Part shown: piece after piece, positions 41,855-50,950 of the stretch | Position numbering within the stretch: position 1 is the stretch's first letter | Layout of the letters: every line of letters starts with the position of its first letter | NCBI GenBank assembly: GCA_011109175.1 | Contig: RDEW01000029.1 | Location: 344,158-408,157 of the forward strand | Reading direction: 5' to 3' | Source: Dicyema japonicum | Taxonomy: Eukaryota > Animalia > Dicyemida | DNA length: 64,000 nucleotides | The notes under the pieces: generated by a model | What the model was told of the DNA's origin: nothing | Database searches by the model: none | Seen by the model: only the letters and a program-made list of their open reading frames with translations | Made by a program: the position numbers and the translations under genes

Positions 41855-43675
41855 ATAACCCTAAAAGGAACACCAAGAAAGAAGGAGTAAATCAACTAAT
41901 TAAGTGATCCCGGTACGCCTCAAAAGGATCGAAAGATTTTTCTTATGTTTCTTTAGAGTACCCACGGCTTTCCTGTACCGAAACTATCAACTTTCATTAG
42001 AATTTGAAGAGGGGTGGGTTTTTTTCCAATTTACGTGTATTTGAGGCTTCTAATTTTAAATGGAAAAAACAACTTGTTTCGTGACCACACAGATCGATGA
42101 AATCGGAACCGTTGTTTTCGATTGAGGCATGGTCAAGCATTGGGGGAAGACGGGACCTCGATCTTGCGTGGGCTATACAGACACATCCTATTCTTCCGGA
42201 AAGAAAATAGGCTATCCTTCTTTTCAAATCCGGATGAATGATGGTGTCGAAAGCCGTTAATGAAGTTGGACGGTAGGAAGAAGGTAAGGTTTTCGGTTTT
42301 CTTGGTTTTAAGAGGGGTATTATAAGTGAGTTCTTCCATTTGCATGGGATGTCGTTCTTGTTAGAAGACATTAAAATTTGACGTAATCGAATTGATTGCA
42401 ACATTACCATGGTGTTTTAGTAAAATTCCCAGAATATCGTCAGGACCACACGTATAAGATCTCTTCATCGATCTTGTAGTCTGTGTGACCTTGGCATGCG
42501 TGAATAAATTAATCCACGAGGTTGGTTTAGGCATTAAATTCCGAAGTGACAGGAATGAGTTTTCGAGAAGTCCTTGTGACTTATAAATGCGTAATATTTC
42601 ATTAAGTTGTGGCTTGCTCAGTATTTGGAGCAGAAAAGGATTCTGATACATCCGATAAACTTAGCTTGATTCGACGAATAGTTTTCCACAAAAGACTCGT
42701 GGATTTCATATGTCCAATAGATGATAATAGGTTCCACGCCCTATCTTTCTTTTTTCAGATGAGTTTTGTGATTCTCTGATTTAAGCATTTTATATTTTCA
42801 AAATCAAAAGATGTGTTGATGATTCATCTTCAGGGAGTTTCTTTGATTGATGAGGAGACGAGTCTCCGAGCCCAGAGTAGCCTTGTAGGATTTGTAAACT
42901 GCACATGGACAAACATCTTTTCAGCTCGAAGGATTACATAGTTTAGATGGTCCACAGCTTTGTCGATGGAGCAAAATGAGCTGGGATCAAAATGTATTGG
43001 GTTATGGTCAATGAAGAGCTTGAAATTTGACCAGTCAGCTTTCTTGTAGACCTTGAAGATTGCTTTAATTCCACGTGAGTTATTGAATTGGCTCAGTTTT
43101 AATACAATCGGATTATGATCACTATGAAAATCGAAGGAGACGTTACATGAAATCATCGGGGGCAATCTTAGAGGAAGCAAAAGATATGTCGAGGGAGGTT
43201 GGGTTGTCATTTCTTCGGATTGATGTTTTTGTGAAGATGTACGGGTGATTCAGAATCATCATTTTTTCGAAATAGTCAATAATTAGACTCCCCCTCTTGT
43301 CTGCCGACTGAATACTAAGCCATTGGGGATGTTTGGCGTTGAAATCCCCACATAATAACACATTTCGAATTTCTAAGGCAAAGTCATTTTGTGCTTCGAT
43401 GATAGACATCGCAACTCCAGAATCTTTGTTTTTATTCCGTTAGCATTGAATTGCATAATAACAGGAGGTTTTGGTCCAGGGTTTTGTTCAATATCTACAG
43501 AAAGCTATAGAATCCATGGGAACAAACAACATCTCGAGTTTCCAGTTGAGGTATACCATCCAGACATACGAGGAGTCTGGATGGAAAAAAGAAAATAGTT
43601 CTTTTTGGTGAAACTTGACACTGAATGCTACCATAAAAGGTGAACCACATGACGCCACGCTAACATACTTCAAAC
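41855..43675 (-). mobile_element. Vingi/Ingi-like LINE (2A-APE-RT, internally deleted)
   Basis: 5' hallmark, LSVDIEQNPGP, MQFNANG, CGDFNAKHPQW, SDHNPI, GPDDI, KPKTLPSSYRP, GGGATCAC tail. Confidence 0.8.
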
Positions 43676-43854
43676 CCGCGATACAATGGATCGACTAATA
43701 CAAACAAATGATACAATTAATTTAATCCCAGAAATTAAATTAATAGAATTGAGAAGCGGAAATTTTTATCATTATATTTTTTTATTAAAAAAGATCTTAA
43801 ATGTGACAAATTTAAAGTCTTGCCAAAATGTGAGGCCGTCTTGTTTAGTGGATT

Positions 43855-46700
43855 ATTATTATTACCCCCAGGATCACTGGGTCAAAGAGAAAGAAAAGTT
43901 CTCATCTAACTAAGTGATCCCAGACCGACAAAGGTGAAGACGAGTCCGGCGGGGTCGAGAATCCTGAACAGCTCTTCTCATTGGACATGGCATCGGCTCA
44001 CAATTTCTGTATGATTGTAGATAATTCGATAGTATTTGGAATAGAGGGCAGCTCGGTAGAACAGCCTCCTTTAATAGTTTCCGTTGTAGTTCAATTAAAA
44101 AATTTTCGATAGGTTGGATATTGTGATCTGGTCCAATTAACCTTATTGCAGTCTCCTCGATAGCAGATAATTTCAATGTGGAAGATCGTGACATTTGCAT
44201 TGCCCATGAAGGACTTGCATACGTCATCGTTGGTAGGATAAATTGTTTGTATATCGTGGCAAGGATCCCAGTTTGATCTCTAAATATTTTTGAGAGCACT
44301 TTTAAAATTCTTAATTTTTTCAGAGCAGAAGTTACTCTGTTTTCAACATGCCGGATAAAGGTGAGTCCCTGATCAAAGGTTACTCCCAGAATCTTCGGTG
44401 TTTTGTTAATAGAGATAGCTTCGTTCTTCATAAAGACTTTTGGTTCGATACAGAGCTGTCTCTTGTAGGTGGTAAACAGTGTGACAAAGGACTTTGCAGC
44501 TGATGTGTCAAGTCTCCGCTTCGAGAGCCATAGTTCCAAGTTGTCGAGCATTTGTTGAGCCTACTGAGTCGCTGATTAAATGCTTCTGTTCTTGGAGCAA
44601 GAATGATATCGTCGGCATAGGAGAGGATTAGACAGTTTTCATTACAGGTTTGTGGCATGTCGTTTATGTAGAGATTGAAGAGTTGGGGTGATAGTGGGGA
44701 GCCTTGAGGGACTCCATTTGGGAAATAGCGAGATCATGATTTGATGTTGTTGCAGAGTACTTGTGCTAGTCTTCCATTTAGGAAGTTTCCAAGACAAAGT
44801 TTCAGGTTCGGATGGATGTTGGTTTCGTATATTTTCTTTGTTAGGAGTTTCCTGGGGACTGAGTCGAACGCTTTTGTGATCTCCACGGATATAAGTACTG
44901 TCCTCTGATGGGTTTGGGGGAGTTAAATCCTTCCGCAATGAATTGTGTGAGGGTTGTAAGGTGTGTTGTCGTCGAATGGTTGTCCCGGAATCCGTGCTGG
45001 GTCGGAGGTATTGAGATTGAGTCTTGTATTTTTTCCAAAACAAGCCTTTCAAGGATCCTTGAGACCGGACTTAGAATAGATATTGGGCGATAGGAAGATG
45101 GTTCATCTATTGGTTTGTTGGGTTTTCGGATAGGTCTGATTAGAGACTTCTTCCATATTTCAGGGATTGTATTTGTGTTAATGGATAGGTTGAATATATA
45201 GGCTAATAGTTCCAGGGCTCGATGGCCTAGGTGCTTCAGTTCACATGTGGTTATGTTGTCTGGTCCTTTGGCCTCTGAGTTGTTGGCCTTAGATATGGCT
45301 CTGCGAACATCCTGACTAGTAAATAGGATCCAGTCATCGGAGCGTTTCGGTTCAATCTTTTTCAGGAATACTTGGTGTTCTTTTGAAAACTTCCTGTAGG
45401 ATATAGATGTGTAATATTTTATCAGAGTGTCTGGTTTTATGTAGACTTCGACTTTTCTCTCTGGGGAGGGTCTTTTGATTTTTGATCCACTTCCACACTC
45501 TTTACATTGGGGAGTTTTGTAGAGAGCTTTCGATAGTCTCGTCCATCTATTTGCATTTTCTGTCTTTATGTTGTTGTCGATCTCTCTGTTCAATTCTCGT
45601 ATTTTCCTGATGTTTCTTCTGTTGGCGATTTTACCATCTTTAGATTATTTCGTTCTCTGATCAGATGTTTCGTCGTTGTGTTAAAACGTTTTGATGACGT
45701 TGGTTGTCTCCCCATAGGAATGTACTTCTTTTTCGCATCGTTTATAATGGAGTTGAACCATTTCACTAATTGTTCGACGGAGGGAAAAGTGGGGAAATTT
45801 AATAGTCCAATACAATTATCGACGTATTCCTTGAATCCTTTCCAATTCGCAAGGCTGTAGTTAGTTATTGTTGGGCATTGTCCTTTTATCCGTGACCTTG
45901 TTTTGACCTCCAAAAATATTGGGTTGTGGTCACTCCTGGTGTCATACTTCACTGACCAGTCAATAAGTGGGGCCAAGGACGGTGATGACAATGAGATGTC
46001 GATAGAAGAAGGTTTATCATTACGTCGAGTAGGTGTTCTTGTATGAGATGCAGGATCGTTGAGTATACATAGGCTGTGGAGGTCCTCAATTATCATCTTC
46101 CCTCTTTTGTCGTAGGTTTGTCCTGTCAGCCACAGTGGGTGCTTCGCATTGAAGTCACCACAGATAATCACATCCTTTAGTGACGCGAGAGGAGTGAGTC
46201 TGGGGGCACTGGACGAGCAGGAACTCAGTGGTGGGAGATATGCGTTGACAATTGTTATTGATAGTCTTGGGAATCGTATTTTGGTAACCAAAAGTTCGAG
46301 ATTTCCATATCCTTTAAGCATAGTGTAAGCACTGTTGGTTATGTCCTCAAACGGAATGCCGTTGCGGATAACTGTGAGAAGACCCCCACCAAGTTTGCCA
46401 ATTCTGTCACGGCGAATTACTGTGAATCCCGGAAATACTGGTGTTGAATTCTTTGGAGAAAGTTTAGACTCTTAAATTAGCAACAGATCAATGTGATTTT
46501 CTTTCACAAATGTCCGAAGTTCGAGTATTTTGTTCTTGATTCCATTTATGTTCAGGTGGACTATTCTGGCTCGGCCAGGGTTTGCCTCAACGTCTCCGTA
46601 GTGGCGCAGGCCTTCCTTATTGGTCCACCCGTGAAGATAGGGGAAAGTGTGGTTTTTTTTTCAAATGCCACCACGTCGTCGGCGAGCCATGTTATTCAAA
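43855..46700 (-). mobile_element. Vingi/Ingi-like LINE, near full length, no ORF1, decayed
   Basis: GDVEANPGR, HLNING, GDFNAKHP, SDHNPI, SSYRPISIL, QHGFR, GVPQG, SYADD, KILGVTFD, C-terminal C/H motif, and 3' hairpin with (TAA)n tail. Confidence 0.9.
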
Positions 46701-46908: not shown

Positions 46909-48619
46909 ATGACATTTCTGTTACTCTTGGTTGGGTTTTGCAGTACCAAAGAATGTACCGTTTTAATTAAGTTTTAGTTTACGGAGAGACAAAATGTTAT
47001 GGGAAAAGTTATTCAGGAAAGAACCAGACTTCTAGTGTAATTTGCCCGCCAAACATGGTCATTTCTCAATGCAGTTACAAGGGATTTGTCGACGGGACGT
47101 TTGTTGTTGAGGATCATTGCGTCACCAGAGGAGCGAAAGATGGTGTCAAATTTAAAGTATCCGGCAAAGTTGATGTAGGCCATTGTAACGTGCGTCCCCC
47201 GGTTGCTATTTAAGGCAATTACGATCGCTAAAATAATAAATGTCAACGGAGAACTGGTTTGTCCGCCGAATTCCGTGATTAGTGACTGCCGTACATACCA
47301 TCCGTTGTCTTGAGTTTTTACTTTAGGTGGGCGAAACTCAGACCTCATACCAAAAAGATCCAAAGCAATAAATGTGTCATCAATTCAACGAATTCAAAGA
47401 ATCACTATCCACTCAACACAGAAGTCACGTGCCTCGGTTTACTCAGCTAATAACCTAAAGAACGAATTTCAGCTCCCATGACTAAGTACATTGTTACGGA
47501 TTCTGACGGAAAAACTAGTATAATTGGAGTCTGCCAAAAGGGATACACATTAAAGTCTTGTTGTTGTAAAACTTGCTTCTCTACAGAGATCGTAGACCGA
47601 TTGTGCATTCTGCGATATAATGGATCGATCTCCCATATGAAGGTGGAAGTTAAAGTTACTCGATAGTCATCTAATAACTGCATTAAAGATGACGATGTCG
47701 AAACAGTCGTGAAAGATGTAAATGACCTACAAAAGTGTGATGTTCCCTTCATTGCTGGATGCACACTGAAAGTCAAGTTTCCCTCATTTTTATAAATAAG
47801 TTCTGGCGAGTCTTTCTCCCAGTTGTACAGAACCATGGATGCAAGTTGCAAATTGACGAAACACTGTGAGAAATGCAAGGTTCAAGAACTTCTTATTGGT
47901 GGCATTTATGGATTCATTTTAGTCCCCAAAACCATCAAGATCACTAATCGGGAGAGGACTCGGTGTCCTTCGGGGTTCACATTGACAAACTGCGTTGCTG
48001 AATCCGACCAGGCGTTCGTGAAACGAGAAATCTGCTATCCCATGACTCCTAAAAACAAGGTATACTACTCCTATAAATGGAAGGTTACGGCCTATTGCAA
48101 AAACTTCCCCCATTCGGACACCTACTATCGCACAGTAAATGCCACACAGACTGGACTCAACTCTGGGTCCTGTGAGGCAGGGGAAACCTTGGTGGCTTGT
48201 ATCCCAAACCAAGTTACTGATTATCCAAATTTCAAAATTTCCGCCAACGAATGCTATTTTAGTTCAAAGTCCGTGACTGCTGTTTGCTTAAGTGAGTGGT
48301 AGGTTAAATAATTTAGGGGATCATTCGGTAGAGGTGATCAGCGATGTATTCTTTGCAAAATATGGAGGGAAAAATAACTCAGTTTCTGTTCAATGTCCCC
48401 CAAAATATTACGTTTCCTCTTGCACTAACAAAATCTCTGCAACTTTCAACCATAACTATATAGTCGACAATATTTGCCATGCTTACTCTCCACTGCCAGA
48501 TGTACCGATTCAAGTTTGATGTGTTTTTATTTCAGGCACGTGCGATTTGTTTAATGGAGAACTATAAATATTCGGTTAAACACGGCTCTAGTGGTGAACC
48601 ACCAAGTGGGGGATTATAA
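46909..48619 (+). CDS. Secreted Cys-rich protein of about 7 PCSK9-CHRD/resistin-like modules
   Basis: Signal-like MTFLLLLVGFCS; modules CPPNMVISQC, CPPNSVISDC, CQKGYTLKSCCC, CDVPFIAGC, CPSGFTLTNC, CEAGETLVAC, CPPKYYVSSC..NYIVDNIC..ARAIC; micro-introns. The junction near 47290-47326 is unresolved and the gene may extend to ~48930. Confidence 0.75.
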
Positions 48620-48939
48620 TATTGCATCCCTTAGTTAGGTTGATTTATGTTGTTTGGTCTTTACTAGAATAGTCAATTTTAAATTAAATTATTGCAGACT
48701 AAGGGTGCACCAAAAGAATTCCCTGTTCCTGACGCTTCCCAGAACCCTCACCAAACTACAGTAATCCAGGGGACGTGTCCTGGAAAGCTGGTGTCAATTT
48801 CATCAACTGTCGAGCTAAATTGTTTTCAGGTAGAATGAATAGATTGATTCTTTTGAATGTTGATTGTGTCAGATTTTACTCCCGTCATGTGTTCAAAAAT
48901 TGCACCGAAACGTGTGACCAACCTTAGAGATGTCATCCG

Positions 48940-49250
48940 TTCAGATTATAGTGGGGGTTGGAAATGGTTACGAGACTGGCATCCATTCAACGAGATTCCA
49001 AAGACTCCGAGGGAAATCTCATTGTCGTTAAACTGGATATCTCCAATGCCTTCAACAGTGTCAGACGGGATTACCACTGAGCACCCGAGGACTATAAACT
49101 GGCTGCCCTGGTATATGACTCGGACAGCCCTCTTGTCTTCCGTTCTCAGACCGGTGTCCAGCAAGGGGACCAGCTTGTGCCAGTGCTTTTTTTACTCTGA
49201 CTGTCGATGATTTTGCGTTCCCAGTTCGATTTATGATATCTGAAAGACGC
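48940..49250 (+). mobile_element. CRE-like RT fragment
   Basis: KLDISNAFNSVRRD, GVQQGD. Confidence 0.7.
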
Positions 49251-49559: not shown

Positions 49560-50950
49560 TTTGTTTTTTTGTCTAAAAAAACTTTGCGAATGACTAAAAA
49601 TTAATATAAGTACTTGGAAACCTAATCTCCATTTTTTGTGAATCATAACATGGGCAACTCTGGGGTCCGGCTCGTGTTGGCTATCACCAAACTAGTGAAC
49701 AGGATGCTATTAGGGACACTACCAGAAACAATTCGACACGTAATGTTCTCCGCAAAGTTAATCGCATTCGACAAGAAGGGAGGTGGAATACGCCCTATTG
49801 CAGTCGGACTGGTCTTCCGTCGGTTGGCCTCAAAGCTTGTATGCAGAGCAATCCTGCCTACGCTGATAACACAGCTACAACCAACCCAAATAGGGGTCGG
49901 CACACCGGGGGGTTGTGAAGCAGCAGATCGTGCTGTCCGAACATTCACCGAAAAGAACGTGAACATTCCTCACGTAATCTTCAAAATTGACAATAAAAAT
50001 GCCTTCAACTCGATACGACGTGATACAATTCTGGAGGATTGCTTCACATACTACCCATCAGTGTACAGCTATATTCATAGCTCGTACGGAAAACCATCCA
50101 GTCTAGTACACGGCCAATATTACATTCCATCGTATTCTGGAGTCTAACAAGGAGACCCACTGTGGCCTGCCTTGTTCAGCCTGAGAATTGCCCGTATCAC
50201 AAGATATTGTTCCACTCCCCTGAGAGTATGGTATTTGGATGATTGCACCATGGGCGGCCATCCGAAAGATGTACTAGATTGTTTGAAAAGTCTGATAGTA
50301 CAATTGGAATTTCTATGCTTAACTCTAAACACCAATAAGTGTGAAGTTACCAATTTTGGATTTCCGCAGCCTGAATAGGATCTGATCTTTGGTATGTTCA
50401 GAGAGATCATTCTGAAAGCCACAGAAACCAAATCAGAACAACTGGAAATACTTGGATGCCCTCTTACTGATGCTGGAATCAGTAACACTCTAAGAACAAA
50501 AGAACATCAACTAAAAACAACATTCAGACGTCTGGAGATGCTGACCTCCCTATTCCTCCTGAGAAACGCCTTATCAGCACAGAAACTGAACTACGTTCTT
50601 CGGGGGCACCCTGCTACTTGAAAATGCAACAGCTCGATGCTATCGATTCCCTCTTCCGGACCACTATTGAACGTATCACAAATGTAAAATTTGACGACCA
50701 AAAGTGGGACCAAGCGACCCTACCTGTTAGCCTGGGCGGACTGGGAATCTCTTCAACGAAAGATCTGGTTTGCCCTGCTTATCTATCCTCTTTGGGCTCC
50801 AGCCGACTGCTGATCAGGATAATTCTCCAACTCCAAACAGAATCATCTGAAATCACAGAGATGGAGCATTTGAAGGGGATGATGCCTGAGCAGAAAGATC
50901 GTTTCAACAACCTGTGTTCCAAAAACAGAGGTTGGACTGTATAGTTTTTT
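49560..50950 (+). mobile_element. CRE-like retrotransposon RT region, decayed
   Basis: GGIRPIAVGLVFRRL, Q.GVGTPGGCE, KIDNKNAFNSIRR, WYLDD, LGCPL, QATLPVSLGGLG. Confidence 0.85.

Follow-up and report, generated by a model that had tools for sequence, protein, structure and literature searches.

A predicted secreted-type array of six PCSK9/resistin-like modules without a protease in the dicyemid Dicyema japonicum

Resistin and the C-terminal domain of PCSK9 are medically important, and the workings of the module they share are partly understood; to our knowledge, this module has been treated as a vertebrate peculiarity. A locus in the dicyemid Dicyema japonicum raises the question of whether the module can also stand by itself, in series and apart from any protease. 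The stretch of DNA analyzed here (the window; 64,000 nucleotides (nt), to whose positions all coordinates refer unless a contig is named) carries the locus, which lies on contig C212 in the labels used for the assembly. Between 46909 and 48619 (+), stop-free stretches that shift from frame to frame bear a repeated cysteine pattern, C-x8-C followed by a third and a fourth Cys. We propose that these stretches form one gene for a secreted-type, protease-free array of six modules that may act as a multivalent extracellular binder. Taken as a whole, this statement is likely to hold; the identity and architecture of the array are very likely correct, and the binding or adhesion role, which is put forward by analogy, is tentative. 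A preliminary description of the same DNA had rightly assumed a probable parasite, and had wrongly placed it in a myxozoan setting: the animal is a dicyemid that lives as a parasite in the octopus kidney.

The predicted gene (46909-48619, +) comprises nine exons, joined by hand and checked by script from their coordinates, and eight micro-introns, all GT..AG, which measure 23, 25, 20, 36, 18, 24, 25 and 34 nt in order. As the preliminary description had held, the coding stretches are split by micro-introns, and removal of these eight introns of 18-36 nt restores one open frame. The exons total 1506 nt, corresponding to 501 codons with zero internal stops, and end with TAA at 48617-48619. Database searches and fold predictions were run on single exons; the joined 501-codon product was used for local counts only. 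The ATG at 46909 starts a hydrophobic N-terminus (mean Kyte-Doolittle hydropathy 3.0 for residues 3-11), and Cys repeats of the form C-x8-C ... C ... C follow, as had been described. Hydropathy later reaches a maximum of 1.45 in a 19-residue window, and no stretch of transmembrane grade occurs after the N-terminus. A short hydrophobic first exon also opens the paralogues L006, L005 and L002. Judged by its sequence, the predicted protein would enter the secretory pathway. The chain very probably reads, in order, short signal-type N-terminus, three modules, a Cys-bearing spacer of ~70 amino acids (aa), three modules and a short tail. The spliced product contains 34 Cys (6.8%), is net basic (58 K+R, 42 D+E), and has five N-x-S/T sites.

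Introns of this size are in keeping with the organism. The published D. japonicum genome (67.5 Mb, 377 scaffolds) has a mean intron length of 38 bp (PMC6736024), and the dicyemid intron median has been given as 27 bp (PMC6543705). According to a 2026 survey, similarly short introns are confined, among animals, to myxobolid myxozoans and D. japonicum (PMC13644364).

The modules were identified with a sequence profile (A1), for which 28 modules, each contained in a single exon, were aligned from the window and from seven paralogous loci. Among all PDB sequences, 17 of 17 matches to A1 were PCSK9, the best being the isolated C-terminal domain (E 3.8e-5). This domain, the Cys/His-rich domain (CHRD), consists of three modules; A1 aligned on the C-x8-C ... 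(V)DNxC core of module 3, and modules 1 and 2 were weaker. In a library of 1.84 billion representatives, 66 proteins matched A1 at E <= 1e-3, with a best value of 7e-24. Nine of the ten top library matches bear Pfam PCSK9_C3 and/or PCSK9_C1 above cut-off (36-116 bits), Peptidase_S8 was found in none of these ten (0/10), and the next ten gave the same picture. The first match in the ESM Atlas was a largely molluscan cluster with PCSK9_C1/C3. Pfam itself returned PCSK9_C3 and Resistin for single pieces at sub-threshold scores: PCSK9_C3 matched a module of paralogue L003 with E 6e-4 (20.4 bits, cut-off 26.7; positions 7-68 of 74), and Resistin (PF06954) reached at best E 0.0011 in one paralogue module of the 28 scanned, below the gathering cut-off.

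The number of modules was assessed with a non-circular version of the profile, in which the five window rows were removed and 23 paralogue modules remained, against the complete six-frame set of 2,082 segments from the 64-kb window. This profile selected exactly the segments with modules 1, 2 (first half), 3, 5, 6 and 7 (E 1e-7 to 3e-4), and the best background segment scored E 0.42. Since the profile separates their segments from the background in this way, six modules are supported statistically at the sequence level, and the four canonical Cys (C-x8-C ... C ... C) are present in six of six. The preliminary description had counted about seven modules. The unit at 47667-47873 was considered as a fourth module and dismissed, as it shows C-x7-C and has no profile or Pfam match; it is better called a conserved Cys-bearing spacer, which keeps number 4 in the module series. 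L006 and L005, the two nearest paralogues, have a colinear stretch in this place that resembles it weakly. The apparent last unit, at 48683-48924, was likewise rejected as a module because it lies inside a dispersed repeat. Stretches 48676-48860 and again 48928-49078 have ~40 dispersed copies in the genome at 68-87% identity. The repeat from 48676 is a transposon and the gene ends at 48619; because the 3' stretch consists of this repeat, the earlier end at 48930 overshot by ~310 nt. From 48676 the repeat runs on into reverse-transcriptase-like frames (49638-50147 and beyond).

The predicted fold leads to the same proteins. AlphaFold models were made of module 6 alone (with A1) and of modules 5 and 6 as a pair. 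They reached a predicted local distance difference test (pLDDT) score of 77 and 80, respectively, with six strands in module 6 and six strands per module in the pair; neither model contains a helix. When module 6 was compared with all of PDB by VIA-align, PCSK9 ranked first (Z 8.2, root-mean-square deviation (rmsd) 2.0 Å, 63 aa, residues 603-680), followed by the isolated CHRD (7anq, 7.5), resistin (1RGX, 6.8) and RELM-beta (1RH7, 6.8), with the next chain at 4.5. In the model of the pair, module 5 resembled RELM-beta (6.8) and resistin (6.6), module 6 resembled PCSK9 (7.1 and 6.4), and the next match stood at 4.3. With Foldseek, the first 21 PDB matches of module 6 were resistin, RELM-beta and PCSK9 (template modeling (TM) score 0.58-0.74, rmsd 2.1-3.8 Å, 63-72 columns), and the top 21-25 matches across both models all belonged to these three proteins. 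The models thus suggest that each module is a six-stranded beta-sandwich of ~60-70 aa, which two disulfides may pin, first to fourth and second to third Cys, in analogy to the pairs Cys626-678 and Cys635-654 of PCSK9, which we take to be their counterparts. An unrelated fold, which the preliminary description had named as evidence against its assignment, was not obtained, as the top four chains for both models were PCSK9 CHRD, resistin and RELM-beta. Sequence profile and predicted fold together show that the modules belong to the PCSK9_C/resistin superfamily, and the identity first proposed for them is backed by PDB profile matches, fold matches and library relatives with PCSK9_C. Below these proteins, weak structural matches were seen to the APC-beta domain of apicomplexan perforin-like proteins (Z 4.5) and to mucin CysD domains (Z 4.3).

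The array is free of a protease. Module 1 begins some 10 residues after the hydrophobic N-terminus, and no other domain lies in between, in agreement with the earlier claim. Throughout the whole genome (searched assembly: 67,542,437 bp, 377 pieces), Peptidase_S8 matches are confined to contigs C46 and C179, and the gene sits between two fragments of long interspersed nuclear elements (LINEs). Because Peptidase_S8 occurs on other contigs only and the flanks are LINE fragments, no subtilase is attached or nearby, and an upstream subtilase exon, which had been considered beforehand, was not found. On the upstream side, frames of a non-long-terminal-repeat (non-LTR) retrotransposon, endonuclease-type and reverse-transcriptase-type, occupy 41997-46321 on the minus strand and end ~590 nt upstream of the ATG.

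The exons divide the chain as follows. Exon 1 (46909-46954) carries the start codon and the hydrophobic N-terminus, a probable signal peptide of ~13-15 aa, and intron 1 (46955-46977, 23 nt), once removed, brings exons 1 and 2 into one frame. Module 1, with one extra N-terminal Cys, is encoded by exon 2 (46978-47189), which the profile without window rows finds at E 1.8e-7 and which the search of the own genome matches at C212:391146-391319. After intron 2 (47190-47214, 25 nt), module 2 is split over exon 3 (47215-47306; profile E 2.9e-4) and exon 4 (47327-47436), which are separated by intron 3 (47307-47326, 20 nt); the second half has its third and fourth Cys as expected and 33% identity to the colinear L006 exon, and its profile score alone is not significant (E 0.88). 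Intron 4 (47437-47472, 36 nt) leads to exon 5 (47473-47648) with module 3, a resistin-type variant with an extra Cys right behind C-x8-C (Cys at protein residues 174, 183-185, 188 and 198; profile E 1.3e-4; 49% identity to L006). Behind intron 5 (47649-47666, 18 nt), exon 6 (47667-47776) supplies the final Cys of module 3 and the start of the spacer; it shows 26% identity to L006, is colinear with L005 and has no profile or Pfam match. Intron 6 (47777-47800, 24 nt) is followed by exon 7 (47801-48291), a 168-codon open frame that comprises the end of the spacer (to ~47873), module 5 (47874-48101) and module 6 (48096-48291), with profile domains at E 4.3e-5 and 5.7e-4. Intron 7 (48292-48316, 25 nt) precedes exon 8 (48317-48501), which holds module 7 as far as the third Cys (profile E 1.4e-4; 37% identity to L006). 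Past intron 8 (48502-48535, 34 nt), exon 9 (48536-48619) adds the last strand of module 7 together with its fourth Cys (48536-48553), then a Gly/Ser/Pro-rich tail of 21 aa and the stop codon. This tail is without counterpart in L006, where further modules follow.

Two of the junctions deserve closer attention. At 47290-47326 a true frameshift had been feared; the stretch is explained by the GT..AG intron 3, whose site, right behind the '..DCR....' exon end, is common to L002, L004, L005, L006, L008, L009 and L010, thus to at least seven paralogues. A donor at 47304, 3 nt upstream of the one used, would keep the frame equally well. Intron 5 is the least certain junction. It takes out the in-frame TAG at 47664-47666 and is the sole canonical in-frame way to do so, and at the same site L005 has a clean 23-nt GT..AG intron. 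An alternative 34-nt intron around the TAG (47655-47688) hits a stop, and an 81-nt one (47655-47735) is in frame but deletes a stretch kept in L005 and L006. A longer 3' exon, reached by a join from ~48579 to 48697, was rejected as well, its target being inside the dispersed repeat. The exon order is colinear with L006. The equivalent of intron 5 in that paralogue (L006:2036-2070; C327, minus strand) is 24 nt long and ends with CG, not AG, which might be explained by a non-canonical acceptor, an error of assembly or the disabling of this copy.

The gene is one member of a family. Searching the genome with A1 gave 48 module matches at ~14 loci, three of which lie within 100 kb on C101; a look for paralogues, as suggested beforehand, therefore revealed ~14 array loci, and these stand in a genome of ~5,000 genes. 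Used as a query by itself, the 168-aa exon found exons of paralogues on six further contigs (E 1e-5 to 4e-3). Between paralogues of a sister subfamily, the ratio of nonsynonymous to synonymous substitution rates (dN/dS) is 0.29-0.44, and for this reason we regard the family as being under purifying selection.

Relatives were also found far outside the dicyemids. The library matches came from an MMETSP protist transcript, the dinoflagellate Gymnodinium smaydae, the foraminifera Nonionella and Bolivina, the hemichordate Saccoglossus and the nemertean Tubulanus. The protist protein P0001 has a signal peptide at its start, six modules that form two triplets resembling each other, and a membrane anchor at the C-terminus, and Tubulanus has three small two-module proteins with hydrophobic N-termini (two of them visible in alignment A2). 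Many outside relatives show three matched stretches, and some show six. Since many of them have exactly three modules, the ancestral package may have been a unit of three, like the PCSK9 CHRD. In these proteins the modules occur with PAN, C-type lectin, WSC, PA14, laminin-G-like or somatomedin B domains, or with a membrane anchor. Nothing relevant was found in the literature on protease-free CHRD or invertebrate resistin-like proteins. The architecture had been called undescribed, which is right in that no paper turned up, and falls short in that protease-free arrays exist in the protein sets of protists, a nemertean and a hemichordate; it is unpublished and not unique to Dicyema. A second protist protein, P0003, is built alike, with a signal peptide, PCSK9_C modules in two similar triplets and a hydrophobic anchor at the C-terminus.

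Among characterized proteins, the PCSK9 CHRD (Pfam PCSK9_C1/C2/C3; PDB 2QTW, 4K8R, 7ANQ) is alike in its tandem six-stranded sandwiches of ~60-75 aa with C-x8-C ... C ... C, and its module 3 is the best match of the Dicyema modules by both sequence and structure. In contrast to PCSK9, the Dicyema protein is without prodomain or subtilase and has six modules and a spacer instead of three modules; each of its modules would have two canonical disulfides, whereas those of the CHRD have three. The label Cys/His-rich, carried over from PCSK9, does not fit, since the Dicyema protein is not His-rich (12 His in 501 residues, 2.4%). Resistin/RELM (PF06954; PDB 1RFX, 1RGX, 1RH7) shares the secreted-type character, the richness in Cys, the same predicted head fold (Z 6.6-6.8) and the extra Cys directly past C-x8-C, which is seen in module 3 and in several paralogue modules. 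However, resistin is a single head of ~90-110 aa with an N-terminal coiled-coil that leads to trimers and hexamers, whereas the Dicyema chain has six heads and no helix in its models. The closest architecture is that of uncharacterized proteins, namely P0001 and P0067 (protist), P0006 (Gymnodinium smaydae), P0015 and P0077 (foraminifera), XP_006818615.2 (Saccoglossus), XP_074659421.1 (Tubulanus) and relatives, in which a signal peptide is followed by 2, 3 or 6 modules without a protease. Unlike single Dicyema modules, these reach Pfam thresholds, and many of them add a PAN, C-type lectin, WSC, PA14 or somatomedin-B domain or an anchor, of which the Dicyema protein has none.

What might such a chain do? 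The Cys positions are invariant across the six modules, and the surfaces are variable. Rigid, disulfide-stabilized beads of this kind could serve as a multivalent extracellular binding scaffold, acting on the surface of the parasite or where parasite and host meet, in the renal fluid and epithelium of the octopus. We tentatively favor binding or adhesion because the protein has no enzyme domain and its relatives pair the modules with PAN or lectin-type domains or an anchor. The role in host interaction or as a cytokine mimic that was put forward in the preliminary description would be pure conjecture.

Several observations weigh against the reading of the locus as an intact array of PCSK9_C/resistin modules. 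The window modules are singly sub-threshold in Pfam (PCSK9_C3 at best 11.8 bits vs 26.7, E 0.29), a phmmer search with one exon against PDB sequences returned no match, and a word-index search with the 168-aa exon, limited by protein length, was likewise empty; we attribute the empty single-module searches to the divergence of single modules. Foldseek E-values remain above 0.001, as the domain is small. Outside the N-terminus the Cys number 33, which is odd. In the model of the pair, modules 5 and 6 follow the sequence order of the CHRD when aligned to it, but taken together they deviate by an rmsd of 9-12 Å, so that the model does not support a CHRD-like threefold packing. One might ask whether the Cys spacing arose by convergence in an unrelated Cys-rich repeat without homology to CHRD or resistin, given the sub-threshold Pfam scores of single modules and the fact that Z 7-8 is possible for common beta-sandwich arrangements. 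This is very improbable: A1 matches PCSK9 alone in PDB and reaches bona fide PCSK9_C proteins with E down to 7e-24, and two structural methods applied to two models put the same three proteins on top with a clear gap below. Even less credible is that the array represents the C-terminal end of a convertase like PCSK9, with its protease exons located farther upstream. We considered it because the module is best known from PCSK9, and found no point in its favor, whereas the confinement of Peptidase_S8 to other contigs, the 5 kb of minus-strand LINE upstream, and a hydrophobic exon with its own ATG, as in the paralogues, all speak against it.

Other observations bear on the integrity of the gene and on its activity. 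A LINE-type repeat begins 57 nt past the stop, LINE fragments lie on both flanks, and L006, the closest paralogue, has at least two further modules beyond the counterpart of module 7; the 3' end of the gene may thus be a truncation by the repeat. In addition, removal of the TAG demands an intron that at 18 nt is shorter than the other seven and whose L006 equivalent is without AG. All this would suit a truncated or decaying pseudogene copy of a longer family member that lost its 3' modules to a LINE insertion and in which the TAG at 47664 truly ends the frame. We judge this to be quite unlikely, given that eight of eight junctions are canonical GT..AG and maintain one frame over 501 codons, that a 168-codon exon stays open in 40% G+C DNA, that no module has lost any of its four canonical Cys, that the profile scan found no module remnants downstream anywhere in the window, and that L005 has a clean intron at the disputed junction. 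A real array might, on the other hand, work in the manner of RELM-beta or resistin, as a membrane- or lipid-binding antimicrobial, a host-cell effector or a mimic of a resistin-like signal of the host. The head fold predicted by the models is common to resistin and RELM-beta, and recombinant RELM-beta is reported to permeabilize bacterial membranes (PMC13647132). The protein is net basic, and the next structural match, weak as it is, is the membrane-binding APC-beta domain. Conversely, the N-terminal coiled-coil used for resistin trimer and hexamer assembly is absent, and a six-module chain is unlike a hormone of ~90 aa. We know of resistin/RELM hormones from vertebrates only, and the cephalopod host may for this reason have no resistin to mimic. 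A RELM-like activity is accordingly a rather unlikely option, and an extracellular binding array is the interpretation that we tentatively retain.

The Dicyema array adds a new architectural variant to a known domain family: the module is here free-standing in a predicted secreted array of six units, and such arrays occupy ~14 loci in an animal genome that is among the smallest. Dicyemid biology gains a candidate family of surface or host-interface proteins, and the resistin/PCSK9 field gains a set of simple, naturally occurring variants with which to look for binding partners of the module. This is a moderate gain, as the domain family is already in Pfam and the function is inferred. Speculatively, the ~14 loci might constitute a dicyemid effector family that expanded from small two-module spiralian proteins and engages surface receptors, membranes or the endocytic machinery of the octopus kidney, as PCSK9 CHRD and resistin heads engage vertebrate receptors. 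Unlikely as this scenario is, it would, if true, connect the module shared by resistin and PCSK9 with an extracellular binding unit that is ancient, spread across the eukaryotes and often present in sets of three.

Two further loci of the family stood out. The largest array seen, L003 (C57:31157-34807), has at least 11 module matches in 3.7 kb; several of its modules show the full resistin-type C-x8-C-x-C-x(3-5)-C, and it contains two-module exons of 164 and 174 aa. The loci C312:2194976-2196013 and C101:344952-346006 gave equal scores for three module matches and are near-identical, which could reflect a very recent duplication or uncollapsed haplotypes.

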